Positions 9,423 to 15,433 are shown, counted from the first letter of the stretch. The stretch is 64,000 bases of DNA from Lepidodermella squamata (GCA_047495785.1 JBLDXI010000016.1:1025862-1089861), one strand, 5' to 3'. Translations and numbers: made by a program. Notes: a model not told the origin generated them from the sequence alone.

Positions 9423-10491
9423 AGGGAATACTCTATGGCAAACCATGGAGAAATATAATTTCCCCCCGATCTGGAACCCCGAGTGAGTTTGGCGCAGCCA
9501 AACGAATCGAGGGGTTCCAGAGAGGGGGGAAATTATATTTCTCCATGGTTTGCCATAGAGTAATCCTATTCCCACATGCGCACGACACCTGTAGGCTCAC
9601 TAAAGGGGTGTAATAGGTACACAGGGGTGAATTCACAGTAACCATTTTGAGAAAATAAAACATCCAACTTAAAATTTCACGAAAATGATTCTTCGTTTGT
9701 AAAAGAAAATCATTTTTCATTCCGGCGAATTTTTTCTTGTTTGCAACTTGATTTTTGGTCAACCTTCATTCGTCGTCGAAATCGTCATGCTCTCCGGCTG
9801 GCCGAAGCATCAGTATTCAAGATTCATGGAATTCAGAGCGCCGATATCAAGTCCCGATCATCAAGCCGAGATCATCAGTTGCCTTGGTTCGATGGATTCT
9901 GGAAGCGAACAAATCGTTGCCTCGAAGAATCCTCTCAAATCGATCGCCAGCCAGGTTGCGCACAGAATTCAATGAATCTACATCGCGCCGTTTGGGAGAC
10001 TGGCAACGATAAAAGCCATCCGCTCGCTGCATGGTATCCGATGGTATTCAGGTCGCAGCGGAAATTAATCGTGGATATGGGTCAATTTCGCCAGTCGAAG
10101 ACTCGCCGAGAAACCAGTCATTGTCGCGTCTAACGTTGCTATGGCTAGTCGCTGAATTTCTGCGTTGTCGCTCAAAACCGCGAATCAGGAGGGAAACCGG
10201 ATCTGCATCGCGACGGCTGCCAGCAAGAGATTTCGACGACCTCTTTTTCACCTCATTTTGTCAAATTTTTGCTTTTGCACGTGAAATTGCTTTTAAATAA
10301 AATTGGGGTTTTCGTTGTTCTAGTGACTTTCCTAAGATTCTCGAGAAAATGCGTTTTCTGGGGGTTTTGAGGCAAATTTCGAGCAAAATGCTGCCCAAAT
10401 TTGTGGCAGTTTCAAGCCATAGAGAAATATTTCTAACCATAGAGAAACATATGTTTCTCCATGGCAAAATTTCACCATGCGTATGTGGGAA
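9423..10491. mobile_element. non-autonomous hairpin-ended element, copy 1 (flip)
   Basis: TA on both sides; 134-nt hairpin 9429-9562; asymmetric inverted repeat TATTCCCACATGCGCACG / CATGCGTATGTGGGAATA; highly similar copy at 14356-15433. Confidence 0.85.
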
Positions 10492-10996
10492 TAGGCTGAA
10501 AACAAGAAAATGATGTTGCACCAACATGGGCCGCAAGGCCCAATGAATTCGGCGAGGTGTAACCGAGCCATTTCCCGAGGCGCAGCCGAGGTTAATAATT
10601 TTTTAGTATTCATCTGGAATTTTGAGTCACCCTCGAAATCTTGGTGAATTTTCGCTGTGAATTTTCAAATTGACGATTACTTTTTATTTTGTTGGAGCTC
10701 TCTAAACGCAGCTTCTTGCCTATTTGTCTTATTCCGGGAAAGCTTGGCCAGTACCTTTTGCTTAGTGTTTAGTCCTGGAAATTGAATTTGCATCGACCAA
10801 CAAATTTTGCAAAATAAAATGAAGAAACAAAGAGGCTTCGAAATTCGCGAGCAGCATCAGGTGTTGTTTTTTAACCTGATGTTACACTACAAACAGAATT
10901 TTGGCGACAATTGTTGGTAAATATTGCAACTTCACCTGATACTCAGAAAACATTTTTAAATCGTCAAGCTATCAACATCTGGTGTTGTATACGAAT

Positions 10997-11136
10997 TGTT
11001 ATGCATCCTCGCTCTCTGCAATAGCCGCTCGTGCCCCGACTCGGCTACGCCTCGTCGGAATTTAATTGACTCGGCTGACGCCTCGTCAGATAAAATTCAG
11101 CACGAGCGGCTATCGCCGAGAGCTTGTATGATAACA
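10997..11136. repeat. branched foldback element
   Basis: arms 11011-11034/11100-11123 enclosing two direct-repeated hairpins GACTCGGCT(G)ACGCCTCGTC. Confidence 0.7.
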
Positions 11137-11161
11137 TACTCGAATCTAACAGCGAGTATGA

Positions 11162-11252
11162 AATAGAAGTGGGATTATCGAAGCCGCGCCAGTAGAAACG
11201 GCTGCGACCTAGCAGCTGAACGAAGCGCCTCAGACCGCTCGGCCATCCTGAC
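11162..11252 (-). pseudogene. tRNA-Leu(CAG)-derived pseudogene
   Basis: revcomp GTCAGGATGGCCGAGCGGTCTGAGGCGCTTCGTTCAG+insertion...GCTTCGATAATCCCACTTCT; disrupted anticodon loop, T-arm and acceptor. Confidence 0.75.
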
Positions 11253-11434
11253 GGGATCTGAATAAAAATTCAGATTTATATTCAGCAGACGGCATTTTTC
11301 GGCGAGATATCGATTGAGCGCTTTTCGGCGCGTTCGTTTAAAGCGCAATTTCGATGGAACACCCAGTTTTATTTGAGCCAATGACACTTCCGAACGTTAT
11401 CATTTTCGATTTCAGTAGACCATAATTTCAGACA

Positions 11435-11886: not shown

Positions 11887-11986
11887 AAGTCGGTTCGAAA
11901 GTATGAAAAATGAACGAGTAATTAACGATTAATTAACGATTAATTAATTAAGGAATCGTTCACTTTTTATACTTTCGAACCGAATT
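11887..11986. repeat. palindromic MITE-like inverted repeat with TTAA-rich centre
   Basis: TCGGTTCGAAAGTATGAAAAATGAACGA ... TCGTTCACTTTTTATACTTTCGAACCGA. Confidence 0.7.
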
Positions 11987-12368
11987 GACGTTAATTAGTT
12001 AGTTAATTAATTTTCGAGTTTACCAAAATTTGAAGGTTGAAATTTTTGTAGCCCGGGCTGCTATAGGAACAACTATGAGAATATTAACAGGCTAATTGCA
12101 CTGATTCATTCCTATCATTTTTTCACTCGGAACTACCGTGTACCAGAAATGCTACTCACTTACGATGCCTTTGGAAATACGTAAGATTATGTAATACCCT
12201 AATACGTTTGTATTTTATCTTCATCTCCATGCTAGTCTAATCTGGCTCAGTGGGGAATGAGTCACATAGTTTGGCACCTACTATATCAACCTGCATGTTT
12301 GTGGAAAAGTTCAAGCATCACGTTTTATTAGTTTCAGTCGACAAGGCGAAAGCATTTTTCAAGCACGA

Positions 12369-14349
12369 ATGCTACAACCACTAAGGAACGTCTTTTATTC
12401 TACTCTCATTATCAGTGCGATTTTTCCTCCAACGACTGAAGCAATCGAACTGCCTCTAGCATGTGTGACTAACACTACGCTCGACCAGTGGATGACCAAC
12501 TTACCTGCCAGGCTACGCGATCTGCCTCTGACAAAACTGGCTATTCCTGGATCCTATGCAGCGTTTTCAAGTACCCTAAACCCCAGCCTCGGCCGAGATT
12601 ATACCATCGACCGCGATTTGATGCCATTTCAGCTGTCTCGACGCATCAATGACGACTTGATGAACTGCAGGCTGGAGCAATGGGGCATATCTCAGGAACA
12701 AACCATTTTCGACCAGCTGTACCTTGGCATCCGGTATTTCGACCTTCCAATCGCAGCTCGCAACCCGGACTATTACATGGTTAATGACAACAAGATTTAC
12801 TTTACCAGCTATATTCATCAGTCTATGCCGGAGATGTTTGGCGACATGAGAGATTTCTTGAATATGAACCCTGGCGAGGTTGTTATACTGAACTTCAATA
12901 ATTTCGACAGCATGACTCAGCAGCAGCATGTCGCGTTTCTGAAGAAGCTCTACATCAACTTTGGATACGATATGTTCGCGAAGCCTAGCGATTACCCTGA
13001 TGGACCGAGTTCCATGAGTTTGAGCAACATGACAGCTGCGGGCCATCAAATAATCATTTTTTACGACAAGGCAACTGGGCCGGCTAGTTCTATAGCTTGG
13101 CGGGGTGATGCAATTAGTGGAAGCGAGGCTTCCTACACGGAACAAACAGGGCTTGAAGTCAATTGGGCTGAGGTAATTAATTGATTAATTAATCCATATT
13201 TTTTAAATTTTTACTCCCATCGAAATAAAAAAATCTGAAAATTAAACCAGAGGTGGGATGGAAATATCTGATCTTTCTTGAAATTTTAGAAATGCTTCTA
13301 TTTTAATGGAATCTAGCATTTGGGAATAAGGTATCATTCAAGAATCGCACGAATCGTTCGGACGCTCATTTGAATATATTTTAATGACCTCATGACTCTC
13401 AAAACGTAAAGAAGGAATGAGCGGCTTTAACTCTGGGTCTTACTTTTAGCGGAATCAAATTTTGGAATTTTCATTTGGCATAAAACCAATTTTAGAAACA
13501 TTCTAAGATGTCATGATTGATCGGCATAATTGTAAATAAATCATCTCAAAATTCAACGTGAAATTCTGTGTTGGACACATTTTTTCCTATTGAATTTACT
13601 CTCTGCCATAATTTCGTGGAAATATTCAAGAAGCGACCTTTGGCTTATCTAGAACTATAGGTTCGCAACATGCAACCAATTCCGCAACGGGCAAAAAATA
13701 TTCTGCTTTTAATTAAAAAAATGCAATTACTTGTTGTCGCGAATTCGAAAAGATTTTAAATCTGAATCTCAGGTTAAAATTGGCTCGTAGTAGCGGGTCC
13801 TCAATAAGCATCCCGAATTGCATCCCAAATTTTAACCGAAACGCCATTTATAGGTTATTTCCGAAAATTTATCAGCCTCCAATTTTACAAATTGTTGTCT
13901 TTTTACTGAACTTACAGGCCGTTCGGTCGCGACCGGCTGATGACACCAATTTGTTCGTCTTGCCTGGTGTAATGGTACCTTCAATTGGGCTGTTTGAGGA
14001 TAAATTATTGATGCAACCTGGCAGCTATTTGGGGCAAATGGGCGCGTGCACGACCAGCAAGTTTGTAAAATGGATCAAAGCGAATCGTCTAGCGGCAAGT
14101 AGTGGAAAAATCAACATATTTATGGCGGCGTTTGTTCACTACTACAATTTTTTCGGCGAGATCATCGCGTTGAACTACGCGGACGAGGCGAAACCTGTCG
14201 CAGCCGCGGATCTAACGGCGAGTTATTGCATTCGGCAACCGACGTTTTATGCGTGCAGTAATGAACTCGGTGATGGTGATATGTGCTCGAAATATGATAC
14301 TGGGGAGTACTATACAAATTTTCCAAGATCAAGTCTCATAAATGTTTAG
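12369..14349 (+). CDS. secreted PI-PLC X-domain (PLCXD-like) protein 1; exons 12369-13172, 13918-14349
   Basis: signal peptide; WM..LP..L..LPL..LAIPGS, Q...I..QL..GIRYFDL, EVVIL motifs; phase-0 GT-AG intron. Confidence 0.85.
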
Positions 14350-14355
14350 ACATTA

Positions 14356-15433
14356 AGGGAATACTCTATGGCAAACCATGGAGAAATATAATTTCCCCCC
14401 TCTCTGGAACCCCTCGATTCGTTTGGCTGCGCCAAACTCACTCGGGGTTCCAGATCGGGGGGAAATTATATTTCTCCATGGTTTGCCATAGAGTAATCCT
14501 ATTCCCACATGCGCACGACACCTGTAGGCTCACTAAAGGGGTGTAATAGGTACACAGGGGTGAATTCACAGTAACCATTTTGAGAAAATAAAACATCCAA
14601 CTTAAAATTTCACGAAAATGATTCTTCGTTTGTAAAAGAAAATCATTTTTCATTCCGGCGAATTTTTTCTTGTTTGCAACTTGATTTTTGGTCAACCTTC
14701 ATTCGTCGTCGAAATCGTCATGCTCTCCGGCTGGCCGAAGCATCAGTAGTCAAGATTCATGGAATTCAGAGCGCCGATATCAAGCCCCGATCATCAAGCC
14801 GAGATCATCAGTTGCCTTGGTTCGATGGATTCTGGAAACGAACAAATCGTTGCCTCGAAGAATCCTCTCAAATCGATCGCCAGCCAGCCGGTTGCGCACA
14901 GAAATCAATGAATCTGCATCGCGTCGTTTGGGAGACTGGCAACGATAAAAGCCATCCGCTCGCTACATGGTATCCGATGGTATTCAGGTCGCGGCGGAAA
15001 TAAATCGTGGATATGGGTCAATTTTGCCGGTCGAAGACTCGCCGAGAAAGCAGTCATTGTCGCCTCTAACGTTGCTATGGCTAGTCGCTGACGTTCTTTC
15101 GCTGCTCAAAACCGCGATTCCGGAGGGAAAACCGGATCTGCATCGCCTCAGCTGCCAGCAAGAAATTTCGACGACCTCGCTTTCCGCCTCATTTGGTCAA
15201 ATTTTTATTTTTGGACGTGAAATTGCTTTTAAATAAAATTGGGGTTTTCACTGTTCTAGTGACTTTCAAGTGACTTTTCTGGGGGTTTTGAGGCAAATTC
15301 TGAGCGAAATGCTGCCCAAATTTGTGGCAGTTTCAACCCAAAGAGAAATTATTGGTTGCCATAGAGAAACATTTCTAGCCATAGAGAAACATATGTTTCT
15401 CCATGGCAAAATTTAACCATGCGTATGTGGGAA
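14356..15433. mobile_element. non-autonomous hairpin-ended element, copy 2 (flop), in the PLCXD-like 3' UTR
   Basis: paralogous empty site GAAT-TA-CATTGAA after the PLCXD-like 2 stop supports TA duplication; hairpin core inverted relative to copy 1. Confidence 0.87.

Follow-up and report, generated by a model that had tools for sequence, protein, structure and literature searches.

The stretch of DNA analysed here, referred to throughout as the window, comprises 64,000 nucleotides (nt) from Lepidodermella squamata (GCA_047495785.1, JBLDXI010000016.1:1025862-1089861). It is eukaryotic nuclear DNA, with U1 small nuclear RNA (snRNA) genes, arrays of transfer RNA (tRNA) genes and intron-interrupted host genes. 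Between positions 9423 and 15433 it holds two copies of a repeated element, each of which opens with a long imperfect palindrome, and the core of this palindrome points in opposite directions in the two copies. This arrangement had been noticed in an earlier reading of the window (the sequence-only reading), and the present analysis concerns the nature of the element and the origin of the inverted core.

The two copies and their insertion site

Two blocks, 9421-10493 and 14354-15435, lie 4.9 kb apart in parallel orientation and are 90.6% identical, and TA stands at the start and end of both. Their flanks are unrelated, which rules out a segmental duplication as the source of the two copies. 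If the TA dinucleotides are presumed to be a target duplication, the element itself extends on the plus strand over 9423-10491 in copy 1 (1069 nt, with TA at 9421-9422 and 10492-10493) and over 14356-15433 in copy 2 (1078 nt, with TA at 14354-14355 and 15434-15435). These limits bear out the two same-orientation copies of ~1.07 kb described in the sequence-only reading. All comparisons of orientation and divergence reported below rest on these two copies (n = 2).

The setting of copy 2 allowed us to compare occupied and empty sites. Its left TA lies 4 nt past the stop codon of an open reading frame (ORF), 13780-14349, which forms the last exon of a PI-PLC-like gene, and the segment 11427-14354, comprising a tRNA-Met, a U1 and this two-exon gene, has two paralogous units elsewhere in the window, making three in all. 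In these two units, which lie on the minus strand at ~21688-23945 and 25083-27597, the counterpart of the upstream flank of copy 2 runs directly into that of the downstream flank. The first empty site (21688-22251, minus strand), which is paralogous to the flanks of copy 2, has a single TA at 21793-21794; the second (25083-25540, minus strand), which is paralogous to the upstream flank, has TG at 25082-25083 where the first has TA. Because the paralogous units continue across the site without the element, their comparison with the occupied site proves that ~1.08 kb was inserted at a TA in copy 2. A paralogous empty site had previously been taken to support duplication of the TA. The empty site stands, in two instances, one of them with a single TA; the duplication does not separate from the alternative, as the empty sites are equally compatible with TA duplication and with insertion between T and A, or beside TA, without any duplication. 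No target duplication of 3-9 bp was found in the flanks of either copy.

The ORFs of the element had no Pfam match, and frameshifting indels separate the two copies; by these measures the element is non-coding. The element ORFs, and all window ORFs of at least 95 amino acids, gave no match to a transposase, Rep, helicase, recombinase or viral family. A longer partner with the same ends, encoding a Rep-helicase, a DDE transposase or a recombinase, had also been envisaged. The window contains none: the element ends occur nowhere else in its 64 kb, and the 16-nt repeats described below are found only in the two copies. Together, the empty sites, the differing flanks and the lack of a protein-family match in the ORFs support the earlier view that the element is mobile and non-autonomous.

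Searches outside the window returned no further copies. Exact scans of metagenome, viral and prokaryote contigs, using two hairpin-arm probes (a 25-mer and a 23-mer) and 28 nt of the far-end palindrome, gave no match. The 16-nt repeat pattern was present in >120 bacterial contigs, which is about the number expected by chance, and none of these contigs shared more of the element; a pattern of this length was too short to be informative, and the matches were set aside. Nor did searches at the protein level, by exact look-up of ten ORFs and by word searches with the hairpin-spanning ORF and the longest element ORF, reveal any other copy.

Structure of the terminal palindrome

The palindrome at the end of the element measures 142 nt in both copies (9425-9566 in copy 1 and 14358-14499 in copy 2). 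From the outside in, it consists of 3 bp, an A/A mismatch (9428/9563), 39 perfect bp (9429-9467 paired with 9524-9562), a 2-nt bubble, 11 bp and a tip; the tip is 30 nt long and contains a 7-bp stem-loop of its own. When folded as single-stranded DNA, the palindromes reached -67.7 kcal/mol (copy 1) and -65.8 kcal/mol (copy 2), compared with about -16 kcal/mol for shuffled sequences (z = -19.9 and -17.7, respectively), and none of 200 shuffles folded as well. The 134-nt hairpin with 39-bp perfect arms that had been described at the opening of each copy is thus present exactly as proposed (9429-9562 and 14362-14495).

The asymmetric core of copy 1, 56 nt at 9468-9523, is the exact reverse complement of 14401-14456 in copy 2, in which the core therefore has the opposite orientation; here the earlier claim held to the base. 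Direct comparison of the two hairpins confined all differences to 9468-9523, which sets the minimal inverted segment at 56 nt, and the longest exactly inverted block is 134 nt (9429-9562 versus 14362-14495). Because the inverted block has a minimum of 56 nt and a maximum of 134 nt, the break points of the inversion fall somewhere within the 39-bp perfect arms. Outside the block nothing is inverted. The outer A/A mismatch at 9428/9563 keeps the same polarity in both copies, and so do the 6 nt of the element that lie beyond the inverted block.

Such an arrangement is also one that an assembler could create, by threading the core in either direction between the 39-bp arms from words or reads shorter than the 134-nt block. 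Only reads that span more than 134 nt together with unique anchors can orient the core. Against an artefact, the window contains no N, and several repeat families at 87-98% identity are resolved in it, including five U1 units and a 543-bp repeat at 98.5%, which suggests a long-read or clone-based assembly; moreover, the inversion is clean and exact, with the neighbouring sequence intact. We consider an artefact of this kind very unlikely. The case nevertheless holds a caution for assemblers, in that a 134-nt block between 39-bp inverted arms is not orientable by short words.

On the palindrome, Rfam gave matches to a microRNA precursor model (9437-9554 and 14370-14487). They scored 47 bits against a cut-off of 99, reflect a generic likeness to long hairpins and were not counted as evidence for a microRNA gene. 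The palindrome hairpins could supply small RNAs if they were transcribed.

The inverted repeat and the far end

The sequence-only reading had described an asymmetric inverted repeat of 18 bp, lying just inside the hairpin at one end of the element and terminal at the other. The asymmetry is real. On the plus strand, the inner repeat abuts the inside of the palindrome (9567-9582 in copy 1, 14500-14515 in copy 2), and the terminal repeat closes the opposite end (10478-10493 and 15420-15435), its final two bases in copy 1 being the flanking TA. However, the repeat is 16 nt long rather than 18, the two extra bases in copy 1 being flank that is absent from copy 2. In both copies 15 of the 16 positions match, and the window contains four matches to the repeat where 0.07 would be expected.

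The hairpin and the far end are further linked by a shared motif, CCATRGAGAAA, for which the window has 12 occurrences where 0.04 would be expected. The two copies account for ten of them, with one in each hairpin arm (9443-9453 and 9538-9548 in copy 1) and three at the far end of each. Two of the three far-end motifs make up a palindrome of 28-29 nt with a 13-bp stem, at 10437-10465 in copy 1 and 15378-15407 in copy 2, and the third lies at 10417-10427 in copy 1. The smaller palindrome and the iterated CCAT(A/G)GAGAAA motifs common to both ends, which had been pointed out before, are accordingly confirmed. The 13-bp hairpin stands ~30 nt from the end of the element and folds better than expected (z = -3.6 and -4.9), while the terminal 16-nt repeat alone forms no significant hairpin (z = -0.6 and -0.4).

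Read inward, the hairpin arm and the far end show a degenerate similarity of ~45 nt with 25 invariant columns. This similarity begins some way in from the ends. Over the outermost 7-9 nt, the two ends are complementary instead of identical in the inward reading; because of this, a single 7-nt word terminates the element on either side, in direct orientation.

These features raise the question of whether a single element is present at all. The alternative is a composite, in which a 144-bp palindromic miniature element adjoins a 925-bp element with 14-16-nt terminal inverted repeats; the pair would have moved jointly, or have been spread between the copies by conversion, and the flip would be an inversion within a foldback element. 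TA indeed borders both the palindrome and the body on either side (9421-9422, 9567-9568 and 10492-10493), and the body has flush inverted repeats beside TA. The resemblance over ~45 nt between the hairpin arms and the far end is like that of degenerate long inverted repeats of one family, and other small palindromic miniature elements appear to be present in the window. On the other hand, solo palindromes and solo bodies are both absent from the window, the junction between palindrome and body is identical in both copies, and the empty sites lack both parts. The palindrome ends 2 nt out of register with TA, and the left end of the body is without motif-bearing sequence, which would leave the body alone lopsided. 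The complementary, rather than inverted, outermost 7-9 nt also argue against it. We therefore think a composite quite unlikely.

Divergence between the copies

Divergence between the two copies is distributed very unevenly. Apart from the inverted core, there is not a single mismatch over the 393 nt nearest the hairpin end (9423-9815 versus 14356-14748, plus strand). In the rest of the element (9816-10493), 43 of 661 aligned sites differ (6.5%), and there are six indel events in addition; Fisher's test for the unevenness, made on a count of 45/663, gave p = 8e-10. Moving away from the hairpin, the mismatches per 50 nt number 1, 1, 1, 1, 2, 3, 3, 7, 5 and 7, and then 3, 3, 3, 2 and 1. Conservation of the far end is not significant: 3 mismatches fall within its final 71 nt. 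Because 0 of 393 nt differ on one side as against 6.5% on the other, this comparison indicates that the common ancestor of the hairpin sides is much younger than that of the remaining sequence of the two copies.

Relationship to known classes of elements

The element was next compared with the published definitions of non-autonomous transposons. Elements of the HLE2 type (Helitron2/Helentron, with HINE and DINE-1 as non-autonomous forms) are defined by inverted repeats, variously given as 12-16 nt or ~11-18 nt, with the 5' repeat 0-4 nt from the end (PMC3627910, PMC4067079, PMC11417382) and the 3' repeat subterminal, directly upstream of a 3' stem-loop (PMC3627910, PMC4067079, PMC11417382). 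They often have a 5' hairpin and a T at the 5' end, they insert between T and T without duplication, and they have a Rep-helicase partner (PMC3627910, PMC4067079, PMC11417382, PMC5148889). In scale, the published definitions place the 3' repeat ~20-60 bp from the end and give stems of ~5-10 bp. A T/A insertion site has been described for Helitron2-like elements of Fusarium (PMC5148889).

When the minus strand is taken as the element's own 5'-to-3' sense, most of this layout can be recognized. One 16-nt repeat is flush with one end (10478-10493 and 15420-15435), and a second hairpin lies near that end, with a T at the 5' terminus. The other repeat is subterminal and abuts the terminal palindrome, and coding capacity is lacking. 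The plus-strand layout corresponds to the form published as "HLE2-reverse". The comparison of asymmetric repeats and a hairpin with those of Helitron2/Helentron elements, made in the sequence-only reading, thus agrees with the published end definitions. In these terms the element comes closest to a non-autonomous HLE2-type transposon whose terminal palindrome is outsized; its superfamily is inferred, no partner gene having been seen.

Several points weigh against this assignment. The palindrome is 142 nt long with 39-bp perfect arms, as opposed to stems of ~5-10 bp, and the 3' repeat is set back 144 nt from the end, where published distances are 20-60 nt. The single informative empty site (n = 1) reads TA, and no register of the insertion gives T-T. 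There is no Rep-helicase partner in the window, and the ~45-nt inverted similarity combined with a TA site would also suit a cut-and-paste element. The element differs from the definition in two further respects, as its near hairpin excludes the repeat itself and its hairpin core occurs in two orientations. A full-text literature search found no published report of a transposon with a hairpin core in two orientations.

Canonical Helitrons (HLE1) begin with 5' TC, end with 3' CTRR, carry a short hairpin ~11 nt from the 3' end and insert between A and T. This class was rejected, as 5' TC and 3' CTRR are absent on either strand and the empty site is TA, not A-T. Miniature or foldback derivatives of TA-specific cut-and-paste transposons (such as Tc1/mariner-like miniature elements) resemble the element in the TA at both junctions, the single TA in the empty site and the subterminal motifs repeated in inverted orientation at both ends. 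In contrast to such derivatives, however, the outermost 7-9 nt of the element, the part that their transposases normally need, are not inverted repeats. The prokaryotic IS200/IS605 elements have asymmetric ends with subterminal hairpins and move by an HUH-type single-strand mechanism. Our element is like them in having asymmetric ends with hairpins instead of matched terminal repeats; it differs from them in that they are prokaryotic, with far smaller hairpins and other target rules, and neither the element nor the window has a TnpA-like gene.

Origin of the inverted core

Taking these observations together, we tentatively favour, short of an assured conclusion, an explanation in which a ~1.07-kb HLE2-like non-autonomous transposon inserted at TA, and its core was flipped in place between the arms, probably in connection with gene conversion between the neighbouring copies. 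In the first step, two older insertions would have stood 4.9 kb from each other. A gene conversion involving both would then have begun at or near the palindrome, bounded on the outside by the end of homology, and the core would have flipped during or after this conversion. The flip itself may have come about by exchange between the identical 39-bp arms in chromosomal DNA, either through recombination or through a template switch during replication or repair. Since the two arms have the same sequence, a strand that invades or switches template could anneal to one donor arm or the other, and the core could be copied in one direction or the other. The in-place flip is favoured because the inverted block is internal and the outer mismatch and the 6 nt beyond it keep their polarity, as exchange between the arms predicts. 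Both the mechanism and the timing of the flip are inferred.

In-place inversion of hairpin loops between inverted repeats has precedents. Inversion of hairpin loops by template switching has been documented in nuclear genes (PMC8794818), and small inversions with flip-flop orientations have been documented in plastids (PMC12928735). As in those cases, the segment is bounded exactly by perfect inverted repeats, the polarity outside it is kept, and the two orientations are structurally equivalent (PMC8794818, PMC12928735). The nuclear loop inversions involve loops of a few nt, compared with a 56-nt segment between 39-bp arms here (PMC8794818). In the plastid inversions 5-50 bp are inverted between repeats of 11-24 bp, which puts the element at or just above their range (PMC12928735). 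A further difference is that the present hairpin belongs to a mobile element. If the core was indeed flipped in place, the locus is a clean nuclear example of palindrome-driven inversion accompanied by conversion between neighbouring repeats, and flip and flop forms alone are no proof of hairpin replication.

Other considerations count against an in-place flip with conversion. The comparison covers two copies only (n = 2). The identical tract could instead derive from two recent insertions of mosaic subfamilies that share a constrained hairpin-side end, and the flip could then have been inherited from the source copies.

Alternatively, the two orientations might be made during propagation, with the element passing through a single-stranded or hairpin-ended intermediate whose palindrome is copied by hairpin-primed or hairpin-transfer synthesis. 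In favour of this model, the flip and flop forms are real and exact, and the imperfect palindrome that shows them closes one end of a mobile element. The ends are laid out as in HUH-type rolling-circle elements, which move via single-stranded DNA, and the 7-nt word that closes both ends directly might be a shared nicking site. The near-identical 393 nt on the hairpin side would also fit two very recent insertions. Several observations are difficult to accommodate, however. The inverted block ends at least 6 nt short of the end of the element and the outer mismatch is not inverted, whereas hairpin transfer at a molecular end should invert all sequence up to that end. The long palindrome is at one end only, no Rep/NS1-like or other replication gene was found in the window ORFs of at least 95 amino acids, and rolling-circle copying of the Helitron type does not by itself invert a hairpin. 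The sample, again, is two copies. We regard an origin of the two orientations during propagation as unlikely. The sequence-only reading had concluded from the flip and flop forms that the family moves through a hairpin-ended or single-stranded intermediate; this step found no support in the present analysis, in which the internal block, the uninverted mismatch and the 393-nt identity point elsewhere. It had further proposed that flip and flop forms in near-equal numbers would speak for a replication mechanism. Such a ratio does not discriminate between the models, as repeated flipping in place tends towards 1:1 as well.

In a specific form of this idea, the 134-142-nt palindrome would be recopied by hairpin-primed synthesis at each movement, and insertions would be born in either the flip or the flop orientation. 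We think this improbable, and mention it for what it would imply. Hairpin-primed copying would form a bridge between rolling-circle transposons and rolling-hairpin replication, and would be the first case in a cellular element, as far as the literature was searched. If orientation were set at insertion, a hairpin-primed step in transposition would be indicated. The 142-nt imperfect palindrome is in any case a natural marker, from which events of refolding or recopying can be read in the sequence, and it bears on the role of the 3' hairpin in Helitron-type movement.

Conceptually, the two forms can also be compared with the hairpin ends of linear replicons (parvovirus terminal repeats and poxvirus telomeres), in which an imperfect terminal palindrome likewise exists in two reverse-complement forms. 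In contrast to these ends, the element's palindrome is chromosomal, its inverted part lies only between the perfect arms and at least 6 nt from the end, a long palindrome is found at one end only, and a replication gene is lacking in the element and in the window. The likeness might suggest that the element is the remnant of an integrated parvovirus-like genome that keeps flip and flop terminal forms. This likeness is a formal one, confined to an imperfect terminal palindrome in two orientations. No replication or capsid family was found in the element or in window ORFs of at least 95 amino acids; the sequence is a non-coding 1.07 kb, repeated with precise ends at TA and with a long palindrome at one end only; and the inverted block is internal to the end. 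We give a viral remnant almost no credence.

Genomic setting

The host-gene families recognized in the window are P450, protein kinase, Cys-loop receptor, ankyrin/NB-ARC and SOCS-box, and the genes are interrupted by introns. For the host ORFs at 19031-20335 (minus strand) and 12369-13184 (plus strand), collections of 1.8-5.8 billion proteins contained no relative above ~29% identity. The first of these ORFs had no exact match on record, and its best relative, 29% identical, came from metagenome contigs; the PI-PLC-like ORF between the two element copies had a single distant protein match, at 29% identity. From these matches, the host lineage seems to be missing from the protein collections searched.

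The two-exon gene beside copy 2 has a weak match to the PI-PLC X domain and is one of three paralogues (12009-14354, 25083-27021 on the minus strand and 21805-23221 on the minus strand) that are 80-87% identical. The tRNA-Met and U1 snRNA genes that precede it belong to a unit of tRNA-Leu(TAG), tRNA-Met and U1 snRNA that is repeated five times in the window with an identity of 89-95% (358-873, 11427-11831, 23586-24138 on the minus strand, 27194-27793 on the minus strand, and 48354-48870). The unit at 11427 is without the tRNA-Leu, its homology beginning 8 nt upstream of tRNA-Met, and the preceding stretch, 10494-11426, has no paralogue within the window. The tRNA-Leu(TAG) paralogue at 24007-24090 (minus strand) is probably a gene in decay: it scores 39 bits only, and ARAGORN calls it a tRNA-Tyr (anticodon ATA).

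In all, ARAGORN predicted 34 tRNA genes in the window, and Rfam gave 35 tRNA matches. The genes form very dense arrays of mixed anticodons, with about one gene per 150 bp, and these arrays are duplicated at 80-90% identity (4347-5792 and 16032-17504; 6747-7048 and 16529-16841).

Five further short palindromic or inverted-repeat units were noted, at 1398-1486, 6269-6447, 10983-11151, 11886-11987 and 57380-57497, with arms of 26-52 nt and 71-91% complementarity. Two of them fall between copies 1 and 2 of the element. These units may be miniature transposons of other families than the element. A 33-nt tandem repeat at 9287-9352, made up of two units that are 79% identical, is located ~70 nt upstream of copy 1.

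Further repetition is seen elsewhere in the window. An unbroken ORF of 974 amino acids at 40972-43896 (minus strand) shows 12 ankyrin-repeat stretches together with a weak match to NB-ARC. Self-similarity of 67-70% marks its DNA as internally repetitive, and a second ankyrin ORF is found at 58037-58996. An inverted duplication, 30646-31796 and 39376-40522 (the latter on the minus strand), is 87% identical and carries ORFs of ~310 amino acids with a short match to the ligand-binding domain of Cys-loop receptors. Finally, a direct repeat of 543 bp occurs at 36788-37330 and 37965-38507, with 98.5% identity between its two members.

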